From sequence record NC_042060.1: a DNA stretch of 64,000 bases; one strand, written 5' to 3'. The notes under the pieces were generated by a model that worked only from the letters and a program-made list of their open reading frames with translations, made no database searches and had not been told where the DNA came from. Position 1 is the stretch's first letter; the number at the start of each line of letters is the position of its first letter. This document shows, piece by piece, positions 3,947 to 50,236 of the stretch. A program made the position numbers and the translations under genes.

Positions 3947-4128
3947 TTAGCTTTTTTGGTTAGTACCGACAGTCTGCTCATTCTTTTCAGTTTGAGCATT
4001 TCGCCGAAGTTGACTAACCAGACCATTGTCAGCCGCAACTACATCGGGAGAAAAGAATGCATTGATATCAAAGTTCTGATCTTGGTTGCGAGTCTTCCCA
4101 GGTGGGACCATCGGATATACTTTTGCCA

Positions 4129-4129
<1 letters not shown>
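3947..4129 (-). CDS. small hypothetical protein in the tail operon
   Basis: 60-aa ORF, TAATG overlap with the tail tube stop, ends just before a terminator. Confidence 0.6.
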
Positions 4130-5013
<884 letters not shown>

Positions 5014-5041
5014 ACTTTTCCTCATTCTGAAAGCCACCCAC

Positions 5042-7132
<2,091 letters not shown>

Positions 7133-15898: not shown

Positions 15899-16462
15899 TC
15901 ATCCCACCCTTTTACTTCGTACCGGAGTCAGTTGTTTGAGAGCATTGATGATACGGTGAACAGTATCACGTGCCAGTTCTCGGGTATGGAAGTTATTGGA
16001 TATTTGGTAACGCAGTTCGACTTCTCCATTTTCAGAGTTCCGGTCGAAATCTTTTACGATGTATTCGCTATCCAGAATAGCTTCCACCATTTCTTTGTTA
16101 AGTTCGAACTCAGCGATAGTCGGTGAAACCAAACGACCCTGAAGATTTCTGATTACTTCGTTGCGGAATGCAATGGCGCCTTCTGCAATCTCCAGTCGCT
16201 CTTCTGCGGAGATGAACGGGTTCTTCCAGAGTTCGGTTTCCATGGTAGGTCGAACAGAGGCTTTCTCCCATGCAATGCACCAGTAGAACCAACGTTCTTG
16301 AATTTCTTCGTTGGCTTTATCGAATGCTGTTATCGCGTTTTTATTACGGTGACAATCCAGAGGACGAGTAGCCTTCGGAAGCCAGGTGTCAGTCTTCTCA
16401 CAGTAAACGAAACGATCAACACCAGGGGTCACTGCTTGGAATTCCTTCAATTTTTTGTCCAT
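15899..16462 (-). CDS. hypothetical protein
   Basis: 187-aa ORF, GAGG RBS, tightly packed. Confidence 0.8.
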   Translation of the reverse strand: MDKKLKEFQAVTPGVDRFVYCEKTDTWLPKATRPLDCHRNKNAITAFDKANEEIQERWFYWCIAWEKASVRPTMETELWKNPFISAEERLEIAEGAIAFRNEVIRNLQGRLVSPTIAEFELNKEMVEAILDSEYIVKDFDRNSENGEVELRYQISNNFHTRELARDTVHRIINALKQLTPVRSKRVG

Positions 16463-16469
16463 GATGACC

Positions 16470-16805
16470 TCAGATATTTACCATGTTCATAAATTCGGTG
16501 TAGTTGTAGCCGGTATTCATATCGAGGTAGTCTTGTTCGACCATGTCGTCATTCAGGTACTTGACGTAAGCCTCGGCGTGAGCAGTGGCTACCGACTTGG
16601 TGAAGAAGTAACGAGCGTGTTGACGGTTCTGTTCGAACCGACGCAGATTAGTAGTGGCCTGACCGCCGAAACCATTGACCTCCATTACCCCGTAAACAGT
16701 ACGATCATCCAGAGTAGTGATCTGTGCAATCACTACACGAGAAGCATTTTCCGAATGGTCGATGAACGTCATACTGTAAATCTCGATTTCTTTGAAGTCT
16801 TCCAT
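16470..16805 (-). CDS. hypothetical protein
   Basis: 111-aa ORF, AGGA RBS. Confidence 0.8.
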   Translation of the reverse strand: MEDFKEIEIYSMTFIDHSENASRVVIAQITTLDDRTVYGVMEVNGFGGQATTNLRRFEQNRQHARYFFTKSVATAHAEAYVKYLNDDMVEQDYLDMNTGYNYTEFMNMVNI

Positions 16806-16951
16806 TAGAATTTCCTGTTAAGAAATGAATAGACAACCCCTACCCGAAGGGAGGGGCCTTATATCGTTACTTGCTGTGAAGATTTTTCTCGCGTACAGCG
16901 TCTGTTAACTGACGTGGCGGGTTGAGTTGATCTGACAGGAGCTTCCGGAGG

Positions 16952-17209
16952 TTATCCAGACCGATTACTTTCTTCTTGGATATTGAGATTATTCTCTTTA
17001 AGTAATTTGTTGAGGTGGTATTTAACCTCCACCCATTCTAACCTACCCACGTCAATCCACTTCCGATAACCAGGAGCAGCAGGTTTGAGGACCTGGGTTT
17101 TCCAGCGCTGAAATCGGAAGTTGCCGACACGGATATCGGTGCTCTCAACAAAGCGAGGTGGGAGTATACCGAGGTCAGTCAGTATCCCTCGTAGCTTGTC
17201 AGAGTTCAT
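16952..17209 (-). CDS. hypothetical protein
   Basis: 85-aa ORF coupled to the upstream stop. Confidence 0.7.
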   Translation of the reverse strand: MNSDKLRGILTDLGILPPRFVESTDIRVGNFRFQRWKTQVLKPAAPGYRKWIDVGRLEWVEVKYHLNKLLKENNLNIQEESNRSG

Positions 17210-17349
17210 CAGTAAGAACGCCTTGAGTTTCGAACACCGAAATGATCGATCATTCGTTGGAACAACTTGCCAAACGAGAACTTTTCATACTCGCAGTCGA
17301 TATGGAGGACATCAACGGTGTCCACCGGTGGATTATAACTACTGCTCAT
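17209..17349 (-). CDS. small hypothetical protein
   Basis: 46 aa from ATG 17349, overlapping the upstream stop (track start 17424 is deep in the neighbour). Confidence 0.55.
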   Translation of the reverse strand: MSSSYNPPVDTVDVLHIDCEYEKFSFGKLFQRMIDHFGVRNSRRSY

Positions 17350-17677
17350 TGGCCATCTCCTTACGTTTGTTTTTGGCCCAGTTCTTTTCATAATCGGAAC
17401 GGATGAACTTAGCGCCGGCGGCATTTAGCCAGTAACGCTCCCCTTTGAAATAACGTTCTCGTTTAGCACGGGTCAAGCGAAGAGGATCGAACATATCTTG
17501 TTCCTGACACATGAATCGATTACGCAAGAAGCAGTTATCATTCAGGATTCGAACCGAGTACAGTTGACCAAGCCGGCAGTTAGCCAACTCAGCTTTCTCG
17601 GTACGTAGCCGAGTTTCGTATTTCTTTGCATCTTCGTGATGATTGCGAGGATGTTTCTTTCCAAGTTTCCTAGACAT
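17339..17677 (-). CDS. basic hypothetical protein
   Basis: 112-aa Lys/Arg-rich ORF. Confidence 0.75.
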   Translation of the reverse strand: MSRKLGKKHPRNHHEDAKKYETRLRTEKAELANCRLGQLYSVRILNDNCFLRNRFMCQEQDMFDPLRLTRAKRERYFKGERYWLNAAGAKFIRSDYEKNWAKNKRKEMANEQ

Positions 17678-17688
17678 TATGTTTTTTC

Positions 17689-17994
17689 CTATTCTGTTGT
17701 TTTACGAAAAATCTTATCATGGAACGTCATTGCCAACACGACGCCTATCGAACCACCTAGACCGCTGGATATGATAGCAGGAAGACCCACTATTACAAAT
17801 AGTCCAATGGTGGTCAACTCAAGGGTACTGATACCCCATGAGGTGAAGAAAGCAGCTTTTTTGTACCCATGAAAGATGTTTCTTTGTTGAAAGGTTTTTA
17901 CAAAGGCATAGATGAATGATGTAGCTGTACTTAACAGTAGTAATATCCAGATAGGTAGATCATGATTAATGTTAATCACTTCTCTTGTTCCCAC
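17689..17994 (-). CDS. small multi-pass membrane protein (UPF0316-like topology)
   Basis: Three hydrophobic segments and GLGGSIGVVLAM; family link is weak. Confidence 0.65.
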   Translation of the reverse strand: MGTREVININHDLPIWILLLLSTATSFIYAFVKTFQQRNIFHGYKKAAFFTSWGISTLELTTIGLFVIVGLPAIISSGLGGSIGVVLAMTFHDKIFRKTTE

Positions 17995-18044
17995 ACGGTG
18001 GGCTCACATTTAGTATGTTGGACATTATGAATATCTTCCAGTTG

Positions 18045-18332
18045 TTAGATATTGTGTTCCTTCGTATCGATGGCCGCCAGCGCCACGATTTCGACATGAT
18101 AAGGATGATCCACATTATGGCTGATACATGCCTCGCATTTGAAGATACGCCACATTCCATACGAAGGTAGTTCACGGTTTTTCAAATAAGCATAATCGTG
18201 AGCGGCCGCAAGATATTTTTGTTGGATGGAAAACTCACAAGTAATGTAACCTTTCTCACGAATGAATTCATTGGTCATCTGATCGAAGATCTGTTTGAGT
18301 TCATCAGTAAGGGCGACTTGAGTTTCGAACAT
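18045..18332 (-). CDS. hypothetical protein
   Basis: 95-aa ORF, AAGGA RBS; contains CEAC and HxxxH. Confidence 0.75.
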   Translation of the reverse strand: MFETQVALTDELKQIFDQMTNEFIREKGYITCEFSIQQKYLAAAHDYAYLKNRELPSYGMWRIFKCEACISHNVDHPYHVEIVALAAIDTKEHNI

Positions 18333-18389
18333 TGAAAGTTTCCTTTTGATATATTAAATAGTTTTGATTATTTCGGAGTTATTGAATAT

Positions 18390-18608
18390 TTAGGTTACCA
18401 TCTGCTCTATATAAACTCGGCTGATTTCATTTAAGTAAGCGAGTGCCAATAGAATACCAGCCCAAATAACAATTTTTCGAGTAGTCTGTTTTTCTATTAC
18501 ACCTGGGTGTGATTCACGAATACTACGGTGACAAAATACATAAAACAGATACAGACTCATTGTAACAAAGATAATGGTAAACCATCCTAGATAGATCATT
18601 TTCTTCAC
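18390..18608 (-). CDS. small two-TM membrane protein
   Basis: 72 aa, two hydrophobic helices, AGGTG at the start. Confidence 0.7.
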   Translation of the reverse strand: MKKMIYLGWFTIIFVTMSLYLFYVFCHRSIRESHPGVIEKQTTRKIVIWAGILLALAYLNEISRVYIEQMVT

Positions 18609-18627
18609 CTATTTTTATAAATAGAGT

Positions 18628-18957
18628 TTATAGTTTAGTCAGGCGGATGATTTCTTCTAAAGCTGCATCAACTTGATAATACGGCCATGAATCAACACGA
18701 GGTTCGTTATCAAAGTATGTCCAAAGTTGAATACCTTGGAGTTTATTGTAGAATACATTGATTCTGATTCCTTCATGGCCAACAAGACCTTCAATGTAAG
18801 CTGCACCATGCACATACGTAACATGTAGTGCGTACTCGCTATCTTCACCAGCGTATTGCATAGGTCTGGAGTAGATGAAGGAATAAGGATTAAATGGATC
18901 AGCCTGAGTGATATGTTCGAAGAATTCTTTCAAACTAGATTTTTTCATATTGGACAT
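18628..18957 (-). CDS. hypothetical protein
   Basis: 109-aa ORF, GAGGA RBS. Confidence 0.8.
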   Translation of the reverse strand: MSNMKKSSLKEFFEHITQADPFNPYSFIYSRPMQYAGEDSEYALHVTYVHGAAYIEGLVGHEGIRINVFYNKLQGIQLWTYFDNEPRVDSWPYYQVDAALEEIIRLTKL

Positions 18958-19019
18958 TATATTTTCCTCATGATTTATTAAGTCTATCTTCTAGGAGGTA
19001 GACTTAATACTATTCGATG

Positions 19020-19412
19020 TTATTTTAAGACGCCTGCCTTGTAACCTTTAACAACAGTTCTAGCTTCTAATGCACTGATTTCGCCAATGTGTTTACGCAG
19101 TGCTTTAATAGCGTTGATGGTAGGTTCATTATCCGCGATATGTCGCCAGTTTCCCTTACCCTTAATGAGTTCAACATCCTGGACATATAGGCCATCTTTA
19201 ACTAGATCCATTGTTTCCACCAACTTTTCGACTTCTTTAGTTAGATGCGTATGAAGACTGGCGAGGGACATGTCAGTCATTTGATGCACATCATAGAGAA
19301 AATCCCTATTATCAGAAGACGATAAAATCTCTTTGGTGAGTTTATTTACAGTGTCAATGTTTGCTGCAATTGAAACTAGCAGTGCGGTATATTTCTCTGC
19401 ATTATAATTCAT
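19020..19412 (-). CDS. coiled-coil protein with ribosomal L7/L12 C-terminal-like motif
   Basis: C-terminal TINAIKALRKHIGEISALEARTVVKGY resembles KIxVIKxVRxITGLGLKEAKDLVE. Confidence 0.6.
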   Translation of the reverse strand: MNYNAEKYTALLVSIAANIDTVNKLTKEILSSSDNRDFLYDVHQMTDMSLASLHTHLTKEVEKLVETMDLVKDGLYVQDVELIKGKGNWRHIADNEPTINAIKALRKHIGEISALEARTVVKGYKAGVLK

Positions 19413-19440
19413 TAATACGTATTCCTATTTAAAATTGGAT

Positions 19441-19584
19441 TTAGTGTAATGCAGTAATACTGCGAATATCTAATTCATGTAAATCATATTTCTTTAGGAA
19501 CTCATTCACCGCTTGCTGAATGGTGTACCCACTCGGAGATTCCCACTGAGTACCATTAAAAGCAATAATACGATAACCTACCAT
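19441..19584 (-). CDS. small hypothetical protein (47 aa)
   Basis: Below track cutoff; GAGGA RBS; MVGYRIIAFNGTQWESPSG... Confidence 0.65.
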   Translation of the reverse strand: MVGYRIIAFNGTQWESPSGYTIQQAVNEFLKKYDLHELDIRSITALH

Positions 19585-19606
19585 TTTTTATTCCTCTAAT
19601 CACAAA

Positions 19607-19636
19607 ATAAATACCCTCCCGAAGGAGGGTATTTAT
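19607..19636 (-). terminator. intrinsic terminator
   Basis: 13-bp stem, UUCG loop on the minus strand, T-tract. Confidence 0.85.
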
Positions 19637-19640
19637 ATCG

Positions 19641-20120
19641 TTACCAATTGATTACAGCGACAAACTCAAATACCCGACACAATTCTTTATCACGATGGGC
19701 ATGATGAAAAGATTTACCTTCAATACCGCAATACGGATAAAACAATTTTCGGTGTTCCGTGTCGCCGAACCAGAAGGTGGTGTTATTGGAATCAACCACA
19801 CCATGGATAGCCACATCACGAATGTACTGAAATACATGAACTGCCTTATCAGTGATCACTCGCAGTTCTACACCGTGTTCCTTCATCATAGCCAGGATGT
19901 CTTCCTTGGTGTAATCTGCTTGTTCAGCATTGGTCATGATCTTGTGAGTCAGAGAACGCTTTTCCTTGTCACCGAAACAGATACAGACCAATTGCACCAA
20001 CTGACCTTCTACCTTGAGACCACTGGTCGGTTTTAGTAGAACGAACTCATCATATTTGTAATCATTGGTGACAATCAGTGCCGACTTATTGCGAGTGACA
20101 ATACCTAAGCTATACGACAT
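19641..20120 (-). CDS. hypothetical protein
   Basis: 159-aa ORF, AAGGA RBS. Confidence 0.8.
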   Translation of the reverse strand: MSYSLGIVTRNKSALIVTNDYKYDEFVLLKPTSGLKVEGQLVQLVCICFGDKEKRSLTHKIMTNAEQADYTKEDILAMMKEHGVELRVITDKAVHVFQYIRDVAIHGVVDSNNTTFWFGDTEHRKLFYPYCGIEGKSFHHAHRDKELCRVFEFVAVINW

Positions 20121-20132
20121 AATTAATTTTCC

Positions 20133-21134
20133 TTATTTTAGAGTATGTTGGACCTTGTGGATGTCTTCCAGGCTAGTACCCAGACCAGAAGCCATGTAGA
20201 TATGTTCCTGGCCTACACGCTTGTGGAAACCAAGCAGAGCATCTACCGGATTTTCAATGGGGAAGTATTCGGTATTGTTGCAGTCCCAAGCAAACTCCCA
20301 TTCTCCATCACGAATCTCTATTTTGTTAGCACTGAGGTAAGTGATATTGATGGTATTTACAGTGGCATTACCACCAATGAGGTAGTACGATCCTTCATTG
20401 CTACGAACATCGATCCTACCGCCATCGATAGTGTCCTGATAGTAGAAACCACGGTCGAAGAATAACTTCAGCATCGAAGTGAAGTAGCTGTTCAATACAG
20501 CTTGAGCATCTTTCTCTTCGACCACCCATTTTCCATCAACGATGTTATTCAGGTAATTACGATCATGATTGATCCCGACATTATCCACGATGTCAGCGTA
20601 GTTCTTATGGAACTTAGCAATCTCGTACAAACGTTCCAGAGTAGCAAAACGGAAAGGACTGGTGGGATGCAGAGCCAGAATGATCCGACCTACGCTCCAC
20701 AAACCGGTCCCGTTGACCTCGTAACTTTCTTCGAGGTAACCTTTGATACCACAGTTAACTTCAAGTTCATCTGCTGGGAAACCGGTGCGGAGCCGCCTAC
20801 GGATAGCCAATAGTACCGATTCGGATTCTTCCGGATCGAACAGGTCTATGCCGAAAGTAATCCAGCTACCACGTACTTTGTGCTGGTATGCCAGGCGTAC
20901 AGTATCACCAAATGGAGAAATGAACCAGCGTTCGTCTTCCGATACGACCAAATGGCAACCACATTGCCACAGGGTACTTAGAGGATCGTTAGAGGCGAGA
21001 ATGCGCTTGGTGTCGTTCATATCCGACGAAGTAGCATCTGGACTGCCATGTAGGTGTGTCAGAATAAACAGAAGCGATGATTCTGTAGTTTGAGCACTCA
21101 ACATTGCGCGAGTGATGGTTGCATTGATGATCAT
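20133..21134 (-). CDS. hypothetical protein
   Basis: 333-aa ORF, AAGGA RBS. Confidence 0.8.
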   Translation of the reverse strand: MIINATITRAMLSAQTTESSLLFILTHLHGSPDATSSDMNDTKRILASNDPLSTLWQCGCHLVVSEDERWFISPFGDTVRLAYQHKVRGSWITFGIDLFDPEESESVLLAIRRRLRTGFPADELEVNCGIKGYLEESYEVNGTGLWSVGRIILALHPTSPFRFATLERLYEIAKFHKNYADIVDNVGINHDRNYLNNIVDGKWVVEEKDAQAVLNSYFTSMLKLFFDRGFYYQDTIDGGRIDVRSNEGSYYLIGGNATVNTINITYLSANKIEIRDGEWEFAWDCNNTEYFPIENPVDALLGFHKRVGQEHIYMASGLGTSLEDIHKVQHTLK

Positions 21135-21205
21135 GAGATATCTTCCTTTTTACAGTTTATGAATATATTGCTAAATAAAAAAATATTACGATGTAGAAAA
21201 TAAAA

Positions 21206-21223
21206 GGGAGTCCGAAGACTCCC
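21206..21223 (-). terminator. intrinsic terminator
   Basis: gggagtc-UUCG-gactccc then TTTTATTTT on the minus strand. Confidence 0.85.
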
Positions 21224-21238
21224 ATTATTGCGTGTAAT

Positions 21239-22351
21239 CTATTTGATGATAACCGCTTTAGAAAGAGTTTCCATACTTCCAATAACTAATTTGGATTTCT
21301 CTTCTTCAGGGTTCTCCATTGCTTCACGCAGGAGTTCACCAATAGTTTTGGGTTGAACATCATCACTGATTTCACGCGAGCATGCCGAGTCGTCGTACAT
21401 ATCAAACACATTCAGATCATCATCATCCAGGGGCGTGCTGTCATTCCATGAATAGCTTGATTCATCCGAGGTATCATCAGACTCACCATACTGTTCACTG
21501 AGGTCACGGTCCAGTTCAGCCTCATACATCTCGCTAATTGCTTTATCGTCTTCTTCTTGCGCCTTACGACGAGAAGTCTTGTAGAACGGAAGCAGGCGTT
21601 GCAGGACTTTATGGAACTTCTTCTTGCTGATCAACCAGCTAACAGAGTAGCGAGACAGCTTTACTTCAGCTGCTTTGATAGTCGGATCGGAGTACAGCGC
21701 CATGACTAGCTTGTCCAGTTTGTGCAGATGATCTTTAAACGAGTTTGCATAAGCAGGATGTTCCCGAAGAGTGAACATCACAAACGAACGCATGTCAGTG
21801 ATATAGTACTGACTGTGATGTTTGTTGATTTCGATGTATACCGGATCTACTGCGCGGTTATAATCGAATTCCTCTGCCCAGGTAAGGCTACGTACTTTAG
21901 TAGGACGAGGACCTTCTGCCCAACGAACAGTCGGATGTTTCTCACGGATGTTCCAACCATGATTGCGATCATACTCGGTTGACTCTTCTTTGAACCAGGT
22001 GAAATTACCTTCACCGCGCGATACAATACCACGGCACCAACTGACGTTGATTGCCTTGTTACGGCTTTCAGTAAGATCACAGGGCATGTCCAGAATAGCG
22101 ACATAACTGTTATGACCATTGGCCACAACGCCGAGAACAGTAGCTTCGAATGTCTCGTAGCGCTGTCCAGGATACACACGTTCATTCTCATCCAGGTAAC
22201 GAAGGGAGCAGGATTCGAAGATAGCACGAGTACCGGCAGGGAAATGGGCACGACCGAAAGGTTGTTCGGCCTTTCTTTCTTTACGACGGCTGATAACCCA
22301 TTCCAGTTTTTCTTTGGTCAGACGGGTTACGGGTTCACGATATTGTTTCAT
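21239..22351 (-). CDS. early protein with acidic tail; probably the ribosome-binding phiKZ014 orthologue
   Basis: 370 aa, basic N-terminus, Asp/Glu/Ser-rich C-terminal region; orthology from counting genes from DHFR (gp004) and terL (gp025). Confidence 0.6.
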   Translation of the reverse strand: MKQYREPVTRLTKEKLEWVISRRKERKAEQPFGRAHFPAGTRAIFESCSLRYLDENERVYPGQRYETFEATVLGVVANGHNSYVAILDMPCDLTESRNKAINVSWCRGIVSRGEGNFTWFKEESTEYDRNHGWNIREKHPTVRWAEGPRPTKVRSLTWAEEFDYNRAVDPVYIEINKHHSQYYITDMRSFVMFTLREHPAYANSFKDHLHKLDKLVMALYSDPTIKAAEVKLSRYSVSWLISKKKFHKVLQRLLPFYKTSRRKAQEEDDKAISEMYEAELDRDLSEQYGESDDTSDESSYSWNDSTPLDDDDLNVFDMYDDSACSREISDDVQPKTIGELLREAMENPEEEKSKLVIGSMETLSKAVIIK

Positions 22352-22448
22352 GGTGTATTTTCCTTTTTACGATTAATTTGGATTATGTACATCCCAATGC
22401 ATCCTTTCCAAGATACATTGGGATGGAGTCTCCGAAGAGACCCATCTA

Positions 22449-23051
22449 TTATTCCTGGGTCAGTTCCCCAAGACGACCTTCAGCTTTCATACGGCGGATT
22501 TCCGAAATGGACTTACCGTATTTTGCAGCCAGTTCCTTTACGGTGCCTTCAGGGGCAGGTTTACTCATGTTGCGAAAGTTTTGCTTGGCGATGTTGTAGT
22601 TTTGAGCTTGAAGAGTTCTCAGCTCAGAACGAACCAGAGCATTGCCAATGCACTGAGAGGTGAAAGTGACCATGAAAGACTTCAGCTTATCACGGTACGT
22701 ATTGACCCATGCACAGGATTCATCCACGTGCGTGCACATGTACTCGGCGGCTTTGGCATATTCCAACAAGCCGACTGCATCTGGTCCAACATCCTGGTAA
22801 ACCATTTTGTTGAAAAGGCCCAGTGCGATATCAGATGCACGTTCAGCTGTAATGAAATCGATTGCATCATTAATGATCAACGTTTCCAGATCTTTGAACT
22901 TAACCGCATCGTTTTTGATCAACGCCAGCATAGCGTCAACCTTTACGGTCAACATCATGTCTTCATTACGACGATTGACCAGTTCATTGGTCTGCTCTTG
23001 GGTGAACACATGGTCCACGTTTTGGAAGACTTTCGACAGACGACTATCCAT
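22449..23051 (-). CDS. hypothetical protein with C-terminal HTH-like motif
   Basis: 200 aa; TVKELAAKYGKSISEIRRMKAEG. Confidence 0.75.
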   Translation of the reverse strand: MDSRLSKVFQNVDHVFTQEQTNELVNRRNEDMMLTVKVDAMLALIKNDAVKFKDLETLIINDAIDFITAERASDIALGLFNKMVYQDVGPDAVGLLEYAKAAEYMCTHVDESCAWVNTYRDKLKSFMVTFTSQCIGNALVRSELRTLQAQNYNIAKQNFRNMSKPAPEGTVKELAAKYGKSISEIRRMKAEGRLGELTQE

Positions 23052-23228
23052 TTATTTATCCTCATTTACAGTGAATGCAAACATAGTACATTTCGGTTTA
23101 GCCGGATGTTGACACCATTCCTTCGAAACCTTACCTTCGGGTTTGGTCAGTTCATAATAGAACTCACCGCAAGCAGCAGCGAGTCCCATCAGAACTGCAA
23201 GAAAACCTACACCTATTTTGGTTTTCAC
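23052..23228 (-). CDS. small putative lipoprotein or secreted protein (58 aa)
   Basis: Below track cutoff; GTGA overlap with upstream stop and abuts next ATG; MKTKIGVGFLAVLMGLAAAC signal-like start. Confidence 0.65.
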   Translation of the reverse strand: MKTKIGVGFLAVLMGLAAACGEFYYELTKPEGKVSKEWCQHPAKPKCTMFAFTVNEDK

Positions 23229-23971
23229 TTAGTGATGATCCGTTGTACGAAATGTTGGAGATTTGCAACCAGCCGATCGAACTCTTCCTCGGTCAGCTGA
23301 TCACGATGAGATTCCAGAAGTACTTCTACCTCCGGAAGAACGTTCAGAGCGATGTCCAGCTGGATACGCGAAATGAACTCTGCGACATCCAGTTCACGAT
23401 CACGACGAAGATGATTTACCAGCTTGCGATGTTGTTCACTGTTACAGTAGGTGGAGATCTTATCGATAAGAATATCAGAGATACTGCTTTCGATCTGTTC
23501 GGCTACAGCCTGACCGTCTTCCTTTATGGTAGCTTTGACCGCGAGGATGGCAGCAACGGCTGTTGCGCCAACTGCCAATGCAATAAGACCAAGACCAAGT
23601 GCGTTTTCTTTGATGAAGTTCATATTGATTATCCTTTCAAAGTTGTTTACATCATTGAAGATATCAGGACCCACCGAGAGACTTCCCAGAAGATCCGGAG
23701 CAATGTAAACAGAGTTGAGGGTTTCGTATACACCGGTAACAGCATCTACGTTAACCAGGCTAGAACTGCGCATGGGTACCCATTCACCGTTACGGAAGGC
23801 TTCACCGACCAGTACACGAACATCATCTACGTCAGTGCGGTTCGGCCATAGATCCTTACCTTCTACTATTTTTACATTACGAGCATGGTAGACCAGTTTA
23901 CCATTCATGCGAGCAACGATATTCGGACGGCACATGTTGTCGATTACTTTAACTGCTACGGACTTTTCCAT
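23225..23971 (-). CDS. hypothetical protein, central TM helix; possible fusion of two genes
   Basis: 248 aa; internal AAAGGA RBS before in-frame ATG 23623. Confidence 0.75.
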   Translation of the reverse strand: MEKSVAVKVIDNMCRPNIVARMNGKLVYHARNVKIVEGKDLWPNRTDVDDVRVLVGEAFRNGEWVPMRSSSLVNVDAVTGVYETLNSVYIAPDLLGSLSVGPDIFNDVNNFERIINMNFIKENALGLGLIALAVGATAVAAILAVKATIKEDGQAVAEQIESSISDILIDKISTYCNSEQHRKLVNHLRRDRELDVAEFISRIQLDIALNVLPEVEVLLESHRDQLTEEEFDRLVANLQHFVQRIITK

Positions 23972-23981
23972 TTTTATTTCT

Positions 23982-24131
23982 CTATTTAGTTACGAGCATT
24001 TCTTGACCATTGGGACCGATACGATGACCGAGGATAACAGTTTCATTAGAAATAGTTTGCTCTTCAAACTTAGCGTTTACAAACAGTCCACCAAAAGTCA
24101 AACCAATAACCACTAGTGCGAATGCTTTCAT
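23982..24131 (-). CDS. small membrane or secreted protein (49 aa)
   Basis: Below track cutoff; first ORF after a promoter cassette; MKAFALVVIGLTFGGLFVNA. Confidence 0.7.
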   Translation of the reverse strand: MKAFALVVIGLTFGGLFVNAKFEEQTISNETVILGHRIGPNGQEMLVTK

Positions 24132-43628: not shown

Positions 43629-44159
43629 TTAGACGGTGTATAAACCCTCAGTATTACATGTTGTTATGATATTGTAAAGACGATGCCAATAGCGATCATA
43701 CGTATTTTTACGTTTGTAGCTATTGGTACGGATGACTAGATTGGCGACCCAGTGATTCTGATCAATGGTCTCATGTAGATGCCCGAAATAAGCCCCCAGT
43801 TCAATTTCGAATGGGATCTTACACTCACGCCCCTTACACATTGCTTCACGCAATAAACGCATTGCAGAATTCTCTGCATTGGTATCTTTAAATAAAAGAC
43901 TAATGTATCCAGGGCTACCACCAGTTTCTTCATCAACATGGCCTGAACAGCAATAAATAGTTGCAACATTGGTAAATTGATTAAACCATTTAATTAATGG
44001 CCTACATGCTTCATCAATAAGATCTTCATATTCAGGTTTATACATTACTTTAACAGTATCATCTGCACGTTGTTTCACATGATGAAAATATTGCTCCCAA
44101 TTTACATTAGTGTAATATAGCATATCCATATTAGAATTACTCATACAAATCAACCCCAT
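43629..44159 (-). CDS. TYW3/Taw3-like motif protein
   Basis: IDEACRPLIKWFNQFTNVATIYCCSGH resembles TYW3 IDxxIxxLxxxINxxxxxxTxSSCSGR; alternative start 44144. Confidence 0.6.
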   Translation of the reverse strand: MGLICMSNSNMDMLYYTNVNWEQYFHHVKQRADDTVKVMYKPEYEDLIDEACRPLIKWFNQFTNVATIYCCSGHVDEETGGSPGYISLLFKDTNAENSAMRLLREAMCKGRECKIPFEIELGAYFGHLHETIDQNHWVANLVIRTNSYKRKNTYDRYWHRLYNIITTCNTEGLYTV

Positions 44160-44881
44160 ATGTTATTGGCATATTCGCGGTCATTGAAAATGCGGGTAAG
44201 ATCCATCCGCTTTTGAATGCGCGCTAGTATCCATTTTAGTTGTTTAGTTGATAGTTCTTGATTTTGCTTGTACTCACCTGTAGCATGGATGTAATAATCA
44301 AATTTACGACTTACAGTAGTAGTATGTGCACATGCAATAGCAAATGCTTCAAGTGCAGTTAGTTTGGTTGATCCATTATCATTACAATTAGGGATAAACT
44401 CAAGTACACTATTAACTGCATCTACACCACTACCCAAATGAGCCCAATCTTTCTTGGTGATGTTGATACCCATGTCTTTAAGAATAACTGTATATATGTC
44501 ACCATTCTCCATAGTGAACATCATAGAAGTATTACCATTAAACAACCTGCGTTCTATGACTGGCAAGATATTTACTTCAACTTTAAACCAATCAGCTAAA
44601 TCAACACCTGCGGTAAGGGCATTCAATAGATCATAAACATTATCTATAGTTCCAGCAAAAGCCATAGTTTTAACACGTTTACCTTGCCAAGTAACTGTCG
44701 GATGAAAAATTATCTTGTGGCAATCATTGTAATATACATCTACACCTTCAGCTTTAGCAGTTAGATCAATATAACCGTTATCTAATACTGGAAGTCGCCC
44801 AATGCTATCAGTTGCATTATTCCGCTCAATTAATAGGCAGTCTGCAATCATGACTTTACCATCATTTACGATATATGTCAT
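44150..44881 (-). CDS. HslV/proteasome-beta-like N-terminal-Thr hydrolase
   Basis: GGAG RBS places the start at ATG 44881, giving M-TYIVNDGKVMIAD; CHK, MAFAG, HLGSG motifs. Confidence 0.7.
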   Translation of the reverse strand: MTYIVNDGKVMIADCLLIERNNATDSIGRLPVLDNGYIDLTAKAEGVDVYYNDCHKIIFHPTVTWQGKRVKTMAFAGTIDNVYDLLNALTAGVDLADWFKVEVNILPVIERRLFNGNTSMMFTMENGDIYTVILKDMGINITKKDWAHLGSGVDAVNSVLEFIPNCNDNGSTKLTALEAFAIACAHTTTVSRKFDYYIHATGEYKQNQELSTKQLKWILARIQKRMDLTRIFNDREYANNIWG

Positions 44882-44916
44882 TTTCACTCCTTATAATAAA
44901 ATAAATAGGCTTAAGC

Positions 44917-44944
44917 GAAATAAAGCCCTCCCCGAAGGGAGGGC
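44917..44944 (-). terminator. intrinsic terminator
   Basis: gccctccc-UUCG-gggagggc then TTTATTTC. Confidence 0.88.
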
Positions 44945-46998: not shown

Positions 46999-48525
46999 TT
47001 AATATTTCAATAGACTATTGATAAAAGCATTAGGGTCATAACGGTTATTTGAAAAAGCCGCCATTACATCACACCCTGGCTGATCTTTAAATCTGATATC
47101 TTCAGGAATATCGAAGTCAGGGAACATTAGTTTAATATACTCCCTAACCTCTTGATCTCGTAGATATGGAATCTCCACCATGTAATCAACGCGACCTTTC
47201 CTTAGAAGTGCTTTATCAATATTCTCAGGATGGTTTGTAGTTAGAATGGTCATTGTCTCATCTAGTGGAACAATGCCATCTAGACCATTTAATAAAGCTG
47301 ACAAAGTTAATCCGCTAGCCGGTTGTTCATACGTAATTCCATTCTTCATACACTTCTTTAATTTCCACCATCGGCGAATTGTGGTAAATAATGGATCTTT
47401 CTCATCGGCCCATTTTGAAACACCCAATTCAGCCATAGCGTAAGCACTTATCCCAAAACCTTGATCATCGCTATTTTCATCAAAGATATAGATGGTGTCA
47501 TTAAATCCAACTACAGAGTATCCTTCATAGTCATCTTTAAGATCAACCCATGCAGATGGATATTTCTCAATTAAATCAATAAAAGAATATTTCCTCTCTA
47601 ATTCTTTTATCTCTTTATCTAGTTTTACAGGATCATTTAAAACGCGATCTTTAACTGCCGGGGTATCATCGAAGTCCTCAATTAAAAGAATATTACCTTT
47701 AGGTAGTGTAGTAAATGCCCGCCTAAGACTATCATTAGTCATAGAGGCTAGTGATAGCGCACTAACATTTTTATTAAAATGTGAGGCAATTGCTTTACTG
47801 ATCGAGGTTTTACCAGTACCAGGAGGACCTGTTAAAACACAAGTGAATTTATAGGGTAGTCCACGATCATCGTACCATTTCCGATCAGAATAGAATTCTT
47901 CAATCTTATTAAGGAATTCTTCTTTGATCTCTTTACGCAAAATCACCGTGTTGATATCGCGTTTAGTAACTTCAATCTCATTGCCCCAACGGTTACCATC
48001 CCAATGTGAAATAGTCAGACCCCTTTCATTTGGGCGCCAATGGTAAGCATCTACTAAATCAATAATTAGTTTACTACTCCTAGATAATCCACGGATAGTA
48101 ATATCCATTTGATCTCGACTGGCATTTTGACTATCCCGGCGTGCTTTTACAAACCAGAATAACCTACCTTTAAACAGAAAGAAATGTAAGCCAAAACCAA
48201 CACCAATTTTCTGTTTAGTTGCACTATAACTTTGCTCATCAACATTAGTTGAAAAACGTCGATTAAATCCAGCTAATGGCTGCTTAATATACCATTCCAT
48301 GAAACAATCAAAGTTCTTCTCGTTCAGCCCATTACCCATGTTGGTAATATGTAGACTAACTGTAAACTGATTTAATGCGAACCTAGCTAGTTTACTTGGT
48401 AAGCCTCTTAGAGTGGTCCAGAATAAACCACCAATTGCCATTCCGATAGCTCCACCCATAACCATATTCTTCTGAGAGATATCGATGAACATGGCGTAAT
48501 ATTGCAATAAGGTTTCTATAATCAT
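46999..48525 (-). CDS. BCS1-like membrane-anchored AAA+ ATPase
   Basis: N-terminal TM; KRDINTVIL..WYDDRGLPYK; GPPGTGKT; ILLIEDFD; SGLTLSALLNGLDG; TTNHPENIDKALLRKGRVD. Confidence 0.88.
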   Translation of the reverse strand: MIIETLLQYYAMFIDISQKNMVMGGAIGMAIGGLFWTTLRGLPSKLARFALNQFTVSLHITNMGNGLNEKNFDCFMEWYIKQPLAGFNRRFSTNVDEQSYSATKQKIGVGFGLHFFLFKGRLFWFVKARRDSQNASRDQMDITIRGLSRSSKLIIDLVDAYHWRPNERGLTISHWDGNRWGNEIEVTKRDINTVILRKEIKEEFLNKIEEFYSDRKWYDDRGLPYKFTCVLTGPPGTGKTSISKAIASHFNKNVSALSLASMTNDSLRRAFTTLPKGNILLIEDFDDTPAVKDRVLNDPVKLDKEIKELERKYSFIDLIEKYPSAWVDLKDDYEGYSVVGFNDTIYIFDENSDDQGFGISAYAMAELGVSKWADEKDPLFTTIRRWWKLKKCMKNGITYEQPASGLTLSALLNGLDGIVPLDETMTILTTNHPENIDKALLRKGRVDYMVEIPYLRDQEVREYIKLMFPDFDIPEDIRFKDQPGCDVMAAFSNNRYDPNAFINSLLKY

Positions 48526-49307
48526 ACTAGCATCCCTCTGGATAGCTTAGGAAAATATTGTCCACAGATCATGTATTCACGTTCTAGAAAATCTAGAGTA
48601 TGACTTTCAAATATTTCACCTACATCTTTACCATAGATTTCCGTATACCCATTTTTGAATACGGCCATTACATAAACATCAGACATAGTCATGCCGTAGT
48701 TATAAATTTGATTGTCTCTGTATTTTGGATGAAATAGGTCATATAAAAAACGAGTCATTGAACTATTGGCAACAGTTGTCACCCCTTTCTGCTTTAAGGC
48801 ATAACGTACTTGTTTAACCACATAGTTAACTTTAGAGCGCTCGCCAAATACCGTCAGTTTATCTACATTGCAATTACGATATCCCATAACTTCAGGATTA
48901 GCTATCACGGTGTGTTTTGGAACACGTACATCAAAGATAATGCCATTAGGGGATAGAATAATCTTTTCATGGTTAAATAGAACATGAAATAAATGTCGTT
49001 CTGGTTTAGTGATTTTGATACTTAACCCAATCACCCCACTAATCTTTCTTTCTAGATCTTCTAGTGACTGCATCACCATGTGATATTGATTGAAGAAAGC
49101 ATTATTCTTATATTTATCTAACTCAAAGTATTTCCAACTTCCACGAAAATGAATAGCATGACTTTTGGTATAACCTTTAGTTAATTTACTTTTGAGTTTT
49201 TCAAACCAATTTTCAAGATAACCTTCGACTGTAAAACCAAGTGGGTTATTATTAATCAGTTTATTGGAATATGATAAGCTAAATCTGTACATGGTTCGAC
49301 GATGCAT
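48522..49307 (-). CDS. hypothetical protein, paralogue of 49364-50236
   Basis: 261 aa; ATGA overlap with the AAA gene; shared C-terminal blocks. Confidence 0.75.
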   Translation of the reverse strand: MHRRTMYRFSLSYSNKLINNNPLGFTVEGYLENWFEKLKSKLTKGYTKSHAIHFRGSWKYFELDKYKNNAFFNQYHMVMQSLEDLERKISGVIGLSIKITKPERHLFHVLFNHEKIILSPNGIIFDVRVPKHTVIANPEVMGYRNCNVDKLTVFGERSKVNYVVKQVRYALKQKGVTTVANSSMTRFLYDLFHPKYRDNQIYNYGMTMSDVYVMAVFKNGYTEIYGKDVGEIFESHTLDFLEREYMICGQYFPKLSRGMLV

Positions 49308-49334: not shown

Positions 49335-49360
49335 ATAAAGGGCTCCGAAGAGCCCTTTAT
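49335..49360 (-). terminator. intrinsic terminator
   Basis: ataaagggctc-UUCG-gagccctttat then TTTT. Confidence 0.85.
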
Positions 49361-49363
49361 ATA

Positions 49364-50236
49364 TTAGATTTTTACAGACCAGTGTTGCTCGAATTCCTGA
49401 TATAGGAAATTGTCGGATGCGTTATCCCAATTTTCTCGATCGGTTACACCATAATAATGGAATTCTAGTTCAGTAGGTCCACCAACAAAACCATTCTTAG
49501 CATAGCTATAAACTTTGCCATTGGTTAGCTTAATAAGTACATCCACATAGAAACTATTACGGTTCCATATTTCATTGTGGATGTACTTAAATACCACACT
49601 GTGGATGTACTTAAATTGCGCACTTGGTTTTCCGAGTACACTATAATAGAATTTACGGATACCTATTTCGGTCTTGAAATTAAACTCACCGTTGCGAATG
49701 TTGTTAGAAACAATACGTGTTAGTTTATTAACCCGATTTTCTTCACCGAGTAGATAGATCCCGGAAACACTACATCCATCTCCTATTGATCCATTATTAA
49801 CTAGTGGATCAACACCATATTCATCAGTGAAAATGGTTTTGATAACCTCTTTACCTTCTCGACGCACCAACATATTCAGATGACCATCTTCGATATATGA
49901 CATATGGCTAGGCTGAATATATTCACTTGTATCGACGATAACATCATTCGCCATTATATTAAACAGTAGATGGTTTACCAGATCACTAATACCTTTAAAA
50001 CGAATGGCTTGGTTCGCTGTATTTAGATCGACATACACCACGACATCAATAATGCCTTGTTTTAGTGATTTGTCATCTTTGTCAGTAGTTGTATCAATTT
50101 TTACGTAATTTTGATATAGTTCACTAAAACAAGATATGATGTCATCATGTAGTTTAATTACATCAGATCCATTTCGTTCAAGCGCTTTAAGCGATACGTT
50201 AAAACCAATACGAATTTTATTAGAACGACGTGCCAT
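49364..50236 (-). CDS. hypothetical protein, paralogue of 48522-49307
   Basis: 290 aa, AGGTG RBS. Confidence 0.8.
   Translation of the reverse strand: MARRSNKIRIGFNVSLKALERNGSDVIKLHDDIISCFSELYQNYVKIDTTTDKDDKSLKQGIIDVVVYVDLNTANQAIRFKGISDLVNHLLFNIMANDVIVDTSEYIQPSHMSYIEDGHLNMLVRREGKEVIKTIFTDEYGVDPLVNNGSIGDGCSVSGIYLLGEENRVNKLTRIVSNNIRNGEFNFKTEIGIRKFYYSVLGKPSAQFKYIHSVVFKYIHNEIWNRNSFYVDVLIKLTNGKVYSYAKNGFVGGPTELEFHYYGVTDRENWDNASDNFLYQEFEQHWSVKI

Follow-up and report, generated by a model that had tools for sequence, protein, structure and literature searches.

A Bcs1-family AAA+ ATPase of Pseudomonas phage PA7 with a predicted membrane anchor and a large insert at the pore-loop-2 position

Introduction

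To our knowledge, no AAA protein other than Bcs1 is known to move a protein in folded form across a membrane, and studies of Bcs1 have been confined to mitochondria. It forms a homo-heptameric ring with one vestibule towards the matrix and one towards the membrane. In mitochondria lacking Tat, Bcs1 takes the role that TatBC has elsewhere (PMC8662606). The aromatic pore loop is missing from Bcs1 (PMC7994207), and in the ATP state of the yeast protein flexible loops appear to close the pore on the matrix side (PMC12219900). A protein with a Bcs1-like domain, YjoB of B. subtilis, has been assigned the role of a substrate-specific chaperone (PMC9565160). BCS1 orthologs are already known from jumbo phages: Iyer et al. 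named them in 2021 in all three major groups (PMC7824862). In our literature search the function of a phage Bcs1 was described nowhere. Here we analyse one such gene in a window that covers the initial 64,000 nucleotides of the phiKZ relative Pseudomonas phage PA7. The gene is the ortholog of phiKZ gene 286, and its product will be called gp286:

46999-48525, minus strand: Bcs1-family AAA+ ATPase of 508 amino acids with an ATG start, ortholog of phiKZ gp286 (PHIKZ286)

The Bcs1 branch to which gp286 belongs is large and mostly viral. A phmmer search of 1.84 billion representative sequences gave 782 sequence clusters at E ≤1e-30, with very few cellular members among them. Within this branch phiKZ gp286 is the most tractable protein, having a genetically tractable host, knock-down tools, and interaction and expression data. 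The identity of its cargo would tell whether phages bring their own route for the export of folded proteins; if gp286 proves to be an accessory chaperone only, the result will be ordinary. New in this work are the placement of a large insert at the presumed pore-loop 2, the restriction of this insert to one clade, two insert alleles under purifying selection, a partly conserved upstream gene (gp285) predicted to be translationally coupled to gp286, and an early expression class that bears on the assembly hypothesis for these proteins. For such work, variants already exist in the form of the insert, its two alleles in natural phages and the isolates that have lost gp285.

Family membership

The 8 kb surrounding the gene are 100% identical to PA7 at equal coordinates and share 95-99% identity with about 40 phiKZ-like phages. 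The protein encoded at 46999-48525 is 100% identical to the PA7 protein and 98.2% identical to phiKZ gp286, and it is a member of PHROG 7485 (phrog_7485, 606 bits). Pfam finds the Bcs1-specific domain BCS1_N (PF08740) with a score of 44.1 bits, which exceeds the gathering threshold of 28.1; residues 33-194 align with positions 2-182 of 182, so that the whole profile is covered. The AAA match (61.5 bits) is split into two stretches. In a phmmer search against the PDB, yeast Bcs1 ranks first among the relatives of solved structure (E 4e-38), followed by mouse Bcs1. The yeast alignment also comes in two pieces, with residues 27-287 of gp286 corresponding to Bcs1 56-323 and residues 403-469 to Bcs1 337-403.

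The fold agrees with the sequence. An AlphaFold monomer model was built from 104 homologs and has a mean predicted local distance difference test score (pLDDT) of 87.6, with a core above 90. All 12 top Foldseek hits of this model in the PDB are full-length Bcs1. With VIA-align, yeast Bcs1 gives a Z of 27.3 (model residues 18-508, 363 of 385 Bcs1 residues aligned) and mouse Bcs1 a Z of 26.5 (model residues 4-508), and the gp286 middle domain superposes on the solved Bcs1 middle domain. Overall, Bcs1 structures score 24-27, YjoB 20.9 and other AAA proteins 18.6 or less. Bcs1 is thus the nearest relative by phmmer, Foldseek and VIA-align alike, and gp286 does not group with generic soluble AAA proteins. 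We regard membership in the Bcs1 family as secure. The initial annotation had proposed a BCS1-like AAA+ ATPase with a BCS1_N-like middle region at this place; the open reading frame is real, and both the family and the middle region have been borne out.

Mitochondrial Bcs1/BCS1L (yeast 6sh3 and 9gsn, mouse 6uko and 8tp1) and gp286 have in common a single N-terminal transmembrane helix (a predicted one in gp286), the Bcs1-specific domain and the AAA module, as well as the ED-x-D form of Walker B and the absence of the aromatic pore-loop-1. Their identity is 22-30%, and gp286 differs in carrying about 100 extra residues at the pore-loop-2 position. The orthologs of PHROG 7485 in jumbo phages (PMC7824862) share the membrane anchor and the domain order. 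YjoB (7w42), which combines a Bcs1-like N-domain with an AAA module, is bacterial and scores below Bcs1. Its solved chain matches the model only from residue 55, so that the predicted membrane helix is without a counterpart there. The large pore-loop-2 insert is also missing from YjoB.

Two phage records (PQ093904 and ON631220) label this gene 'ATP-dependent zinc metalloprotease FtsH'. The name is wrong for a protein without the peptidase domain. We rejected an FtsH identity, as Pfam finds no M41 zinc peptidase domain and the NCBIfam FtsH model reaches 44.8 bits against a cut-off of 600; what gp286 does share with FtsH is a classical-clade AAA module and a membrane anchor. PADLOC gave no full-length match to a defence system, only local P-loop matches to IetA and TRIP13.

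Domain layout and membrane anchor

Four parts of the protein follow the Bcs1 plan:

48409-48465, minus strand: predicted N-terminal membrane helix, residues 21-39 (MVMGGAIGMAIGGLFWTTL), from hydropathy, the model and the Bcs1 superposition
47944-48429, minus strand: Bcs1-specific middle domain, residues 33-194 (PF08740, pLDDT above 90)
47663-47830, minus strand: first half of the AAA module, with Walker A and Walker B and without an aromatic pore-loop-1, from motifs and the yeast Bcs1 alignment
46999-47319, minus strand: second half of the AAA module and a short lid (DG 416-417, N431, R442/R445, GCD 484-486)

By motif reading, Walker A is GPPGTGKT (residues 233-240), Walker B is ILLIEDFD (279-286), the helix LLNGLDG spans residues 411-417, sensor-1 is TTN (429-431) and the Arg fingers lie in RKGR (442-445). 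Residues G233, G236, G238, K239, N431, R442 and R445 are invariant across the 104-sequence alignment. Hence the ATPase is complete in Walker A and B, sensor 1 and Arg finger, as initially annotated, and its catalytic residues are conserved. The segment following strand beta-2 aligns with that of yeast Bcs1, and the aromatic-hydrophobic-Gly motif is absent in both sequences. Sequence and model indicate that gp286 is of a non-threading type like Bcs1, without an aromatic loop for unfolded chains.

Residues 21-39 are modelled within a long helix (residues 21-54) which superposes on the membrane helix of Bcs1. A hydrophobic segment near residue 20 is present in 92% of 214 homologs. In the same set, lysine plus arginine residues flanking this segment average 2.8 on the C-terminal side and 0.9 on the N-terminal side, and 89% have the excess on the C-terminal side. 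This family-wide asymmetry predicts an N-out/C-in orientation, which is the topology of Bcs1. The N-terminal transmembrane segment proposed earlier can therefore be kept as a predicted anchor that is conserved throughout the family.

The insert at the pore-loop-2 position

The two halves of the AAA module are separated by a stretch that yeast Bcs1 has only in a short form:

47320-47662, minus strand: insert at the pore-loop-2 position, residues 288-402 (115 residues as compared to 13 in yeast Bcs1)

The earlier estimate of about 47320-47665 for this insert was correct. Its length of about 115 residues depends on what it is compared with. The figure holds against yeast Bcs1, where the net insertion is about 100 amino acids; against the nearest phage relatives, in which the spacing between Walker B and the LLNxLDG helix is 41-55, only about 70-80 amino acids are extra. 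The insert starts around the nearly invariant R294, eight residues past Walker B, and it stops before helix alpha-3 (LTLSALLNGLDG), itself ahead of sensor-1. The site between the Walker B arginine and the next helix is, we assume, pore-loop 2 as in classical AAA proteins of the FtsH/YME1 group, and the DG that ends the helix after the insert is presumably the inter-subunit signalling motif of the same group. AlphaFold predicts three helices at 299-332, a beta-hairpin at 336-349 and a helical C-terminal part at 364-394, at a pLDDT of 52-80. The first helix (DPVKLxxEIxxL) and the last helix (RxxELxxR...GG) are the parts shared within the clade. A role of the insert in the selection of a cargo or a partner is a reasonable inference from its position. 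Given that flexible loops appear to close the matrix-side pore of yeast Bcs1 in the ATP state and that the equivalent loop has grown here to the size of a domain, a gate or docking module for cargo or partner would be the most economical reading.

Among 216 homologs the spacing between Walker B and LLNxLDG is continuous from 17 to about 70, with a few proteins at 86-95 and a small group at 119-132. PHROG 7485 members mostly have 20-60 residues here, in contrast to the 119-132 of the gp286 clade. The pore-loop-2 site is an expansion hot-spot throughout the phage family, and the PA7 protein stands at its extreme. Spacings of 119-132 occur only in PA7/phiKZ, SL2, PhiPA3, PS119XW (Pawinskivirus) and the metagenomic proteins P0004, P0005 and P0124. 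In a tree computed with the insert columns removed these long-insert proteins form a single clade with a Shimodaira-Hasegawa-like approximate likelihood ratio test (SH-aLRT) support of 93, the sister being a Noxifer-like group with spacings of 41-55; this is a quick tree and its support is not decisive. Only two of the 150 best phmmer clusters match in a single stretch that spans the insert. An insert-only tblastn search of 50,697 phage records (E ≤1) recovered only 46 Phikzvirus sequences (37 with allele A and 9 with allele B, see below) and did not recover PhiPA3. The best score of an insert-only language-model search of the ESM Atlas was 0.55, which is noise.

The insert is the least conserved region of the protein. 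PA7 and SL2 are 67% identical in the insert and 97-98% in the core; the corresponding values for PA7 and PhiPA3 are 24% and 59-74%. Phikzvirus has two insert alleles, A in PA7, phiKZ, OMKO1 and fMGyn-Pae01, and B in SL2, 124.01, Bobae and others. Codon analysis between the alleles gives dS (synonymous divergence) of 1.25-1.49, dN (nonsynonymous divergence) of 0.20 and dN/dS of 0.14-0.17 in the insert, as compared to dS of 0.1-0.6 and dN/dS of 0.01-0.08 in its flanks. By these rates the gene is a recombination mosaic, and purifying selection acts on the insert more loosely than on the core. Positive selection on the insert was considered and rejected: dN/dS stays at 0.14-0.17, and dS is saturated in keeping with the high divergence, so that the alleles are old and were exchanged by recombination.

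A fast-changing segment of this kind might have no function at all, i.e. it might be an expanded loop that the protein tolerates, or what is left of a mobile element (e.g. an intein), in an ordinary Bcs1-like protein. The variation of the site from 17 to about 130 residues, the high rate of change, the low confidence with which the insert is modelled and the intein carried by the relative P0027 would all agree with this. However, a dN/dS of 0.14-0.17 at dS above 1 is purifying selection, a length of about 120 is kept across a clade whose core identity is 35-57%, and secondary structure is predicted throughout the insert. We therefore hold a functionless insert to be improbable. Its retention throughout the clade and the purifying selection between old alleles are evidence for a function, as far as can be judged from sequences. 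An origin from an intein or another mobile element was rejected separately: Pfam finds no Hint or LAGLIDADG domain in the insert, intein end motifs are absent, and the insert ends in ...YEQPASG. The intein of P0027 (a metagenomic relative of 807 amino acids) is of the LAGLIDADG type, about 345 amino acids long, and lies inside Walker A and not at the insert site. It is placed after GPPGTGK and ends in ...VVTHN, followed by T.

Proposed mode of action

The reading that we favour, with a probability of roughly 0.45, is that gp286 is a membrane-anchored Bcs1-type ring which handles a folded protein, the insert serving as its docking or gating module. In this scheme gp286 would sit in the inner membrane of the host, exposing a short N-terminus on the outside and the ATPase to the cytoplasm, and its subunits would assemble into a Bcs1-like ring around a cytoplasmic cavity. 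By concerted contraction driven by ATP, the ring would then push or pass on a folded protein, or a folded domain, either into the membrane or to its other side, independently of Tat. The cargo would be a protein other than the Rieske protein, because the EWR and DDR motifs with which yeast Bcs1 contacts its cargo are not kept: only the Trp remains (W180, corresponding to W213) and DDR has become NDS. This loss does not argue against the fold or the mechanism. The insert would grow from pore-loop 2, the loop which lines the cytoplasmic mouth of the ring and adjoins helix alpha-3 with the DG signalling motif, and it should therefore move with the nucleotide state. There it may dock or gate a cargo or a partner. 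The first candidate for either would be gp285, encoded directly upstream:

48522-49307, minus strand: gp285 ortholog of 261 amino acids, directly upstream; its stop overlaps the start of the ATPase gene (ATGA)

Several observations weigh against this reading. The insert is modelled at low confidence (pLDDT 52-69), and its location at the ring mouth would follow from homology and not from a model of the ring. Residues 21-39 are only moderately hydrophobic, with a Kyte-Doolittle mean over 19 residues of 1.51, just below the usual line of 1.6. We take YjoB to be soluble, in which case a Bcs1-like fold can also be that of a soluble chaperone. The only physical interaction data, namely co-elution with the 70S ribosome and cross-links to L7/L12, L10 and L11 (see below), do not obviously fit a translocase. 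As for gp285, the phages SL2 (L003), OMKO1 (L014) and fMGyn-Pae01 (L015) lack it and yet have the insert, each of the two insert alleles is found both with and without gp285 (four combinations), and at the long-insert locus of P0124 the upstream genes have no detectable similarity to gp285. Isolates without gp285 and the P0124 locus show that gp285 is not an obligatory partner of the insert.

Expression, knock-down and interaction data

Gerovac et al. (2025) listed gene 286 of phiKZ as uncharacterized and non-core for Chimalliviridae (PMC12571901). Antisense knock-down of the gene left plaques unaffected and reduced the level of ChmA, which is also lowered by many unrelated knock-downs (PMC12571901). 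In the source data of the same study, PHIKZ286 peptides were detected, and PHIKZ286 has 3541, 4784, 1564, 955 and 1011 reads at 5, 10, 15, 20 and 30 min, respectively. The mRNA peak at 5-10 min makes gp286 an early gene. Silencing of ChmA leaves PHIKZ286 transcripts high, and capsid mRNA rises only at 20-30 min (PMC12571901 source data). From these published data gp286 is an accessory rather than an essential factor.

Homologs of gp286 are present in 156 phage records, many of them outside the nucleus-forming family. Those outside Chimalliviridae include phiTE (142 kb, Vequintavirinae), CcrColossus and related Caulobacter and Brevundimonas phages, Citromicrobium phage vB_CbaS-RXM and Dinoroseobacter phage vB_DshS_R26L. 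A scan of 185,579 prokaryotic species with one genome per species yielded only about a dozen hits of nearly full length (23-31% identity), of which almost all came from metagenome bins and none from Pseudomonas; the search patterns, taken from 13 sequences, were narrow and may miss distant bacterial relatives. The small number of prokaryotic matches suggests that this Bcs1-like family is mainly viral.

The initial annotation had linked the protein to the membrane-bound and shelled compartments of such phages. On this view gp286 could act on the early lipid vesicle that holds the injected genome, or at the handover to the ChmA shell, by moving folded proteins across that membrane. Early expression coincides with the vesicle stage, transcripts stay high under ChmA knock-down, ChmA itself falls when gene 286 is knocked down, and an N-out/C-in orientation would direct cytoplasmic cargo into a lumen derived from the periplasmic side. 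Set against this, the gene is non-core in Chimalliviridae and has homologs in phiTE and in Caulobacter, Brevundimonas, Citromicrobium and Dinoroseobacter phages, and a non-core status together with such a wide distribution argues against a role specific to nucleus-forming phages. Plaques are normal upon knock-down, and the effect on ChmA is shared with many unrelated knock-downs. The link to the compartments is thus weak, and we consider this alternative quite unlikely.

The time course bears also on a role in virion assembly, in which folded proteins would be loaded into membrane-proximal proheads, as was proposed in 2021 for the jumbo-phage BCS1 orthologs (PMC7824862). The homolog in Klebsiella phage fENko-Kae01 was indeed seen in a phage preparation by liquid chromatography-tandem mass spectrometry. 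That sample was, however, an ultrafiltered lysate; the proteins detected in it, 220 of 578, include many that are non-structural. The gp286 mRNA peaks at 5-10 min and falls as capsid mRNA rises at 20-30 min, so the early timing speaks against a dedicated role in assembly, and plaque formation is normal when gene 286 is knocked down. Among the explanations considered here virion assembly seems very unlikely.

Fossati et al. (2023) found that PHIKZ285 and PHIKZ286 co-elute with the 70S ribosome in size-exclusion chromatography-mass spectrometry, and that cross-linking mass spectrometry connects PHIKZ286 to rplL, rplK and rplJ and PHIKZ285 to rpmC (PMC10449902). The authors noted that the ribosome signal may reflect nascent chains and that membrane complexes share the high-mass fractions (PMC10449902). 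Taken at face value, the data would make gp286 a ribosome-associated AAA+ chaperone or remodeller, sitting at the L7/L12 stalk with gp285 near the exit tunnel. The two proteins would tune translation or capture new phage proteins, and the insert, which contains 13 lysines, would be the ribosome contact. The early expression of the gene and the lowered ChmA level upon knock-down would suit such a role, and YjoB, if soluble as assumed above, is an example of a Bcs1-like fold acting as a soluble chaperone. Apart from the caution of the authors, the L7/L12 protein is abundant, flexible and lysine-rich, and a ribosome-associated role gives no reason for the conservation of the membrane anchor or for the presence of a complete Bcs1 middle domain. 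We judge it rather unlikely.

The membrane-anchored Bcs1-type ring that we favour can be extended to take in part of these data. gp286 might be an early, Tat-independent exporter whose ring moves a folded phage protein out of the cytoplasm. The ring would lie either in the inner membrane or in the membrane of the early genome-holding vesicle, which is probably derived from it, and the insert at the ring mouth would be a docking platform that picks the cargo or takes it directly from the ribosome. Such an exporter would account for the cross-links to the stalk and for the link of gp285 near the exit tunnel. In this full form the proposal is speculative, and we would not give it better odds than the compartment role discussed above.

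gp285 and the gene neighbourhood

The overlap of the gp285 stop with the gp286 start is accompanied by a Shine-Dalgarno-like AGAGGG upstream of the gp286 start. As read from the sequence, gp285 is translationally coupled to gp286. Two terminator-like hairpins frame the genes:

49335-49360, minus strand: intrinsic-terminator-like hairpin with an 11-bp stem and a T-run, just upstream of gp285
44925-44944, minus strand: strong terminator-like hairpin, the next one downstream, which would close a gp285-gp286-gp286.1-gp287-gp288 unit

In published phiKZ counts, reads fall about 4-fold from gp284 to gp286 (PMC12571901 source data). In PhiPA3, PS119XW and the metagenomic loci L005 and L006, too, the gene immediately upstream of the long-insert ATPase has 250-275 codons, and the five proteins at the gp285 position are homologous (hhalign probability 95%, E 2.7e-8). 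No gp285-type gene was found upstream of the shorter-loop ATPases of Noxifer, fENko-Kae01, phiTE and the P0121 locus; among the loci compared, the gp285-type upstream gene is confined to the long-insert clade. A strict co-evolution of gp285 and the insert was nevertheless rejected, given the four combinations mentioned above and the upstream genes of P0124, which are unlike gp285. On the P0124 contig (L010:2274-3955) there are two adjacent upstream genes of 282 and 278 codons, i.e. of the size of gp284 and gp285, with no similarity to gp285. The natural deletion of gp285 is linked to another N-terminal allele of the ATPase, which begins with MIDTFI... instead of MIIETLL....

The gp285 family is small, with only three further proteins among 5.8 billion. 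Searches gave no match in Pfam, NCBIfam or PADLOC, only noise in the Atlas and no hits in a profile search of the PDB. The AlphaFold model of gp285 is poor (pLDDT 56) and its best Foldseek E is 0.095; we claim no fold for this protein.

Some minor observations concern the neighbouring genes. The gp284 ortholog (49364-50236, minus strand) matches the SidC N-terminal domain of Pfam below threshold (21.1 bits, cut-off 25), and in published data the early mRNA of phiKZ gp284 is about four times that of gp286. About 2 kb downstream of the AAA gene, past a terminator, the gp289 ortholog (44150-44887, minus strand) weakly matches PHROG 1040, 'peptidase HslV family' (E 6e-6), and has no Pfam or PDB sequence hit. 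The gp290 ortholog (43629-44159, minus strand) resembles the TYW3 methyltransferase family only weakly and below threshold (18 bits). In the window as a whole, G+C content is 43-46% at 4001-6000 and 16001-24000, as compared to 30-38% mostly elsewhere.

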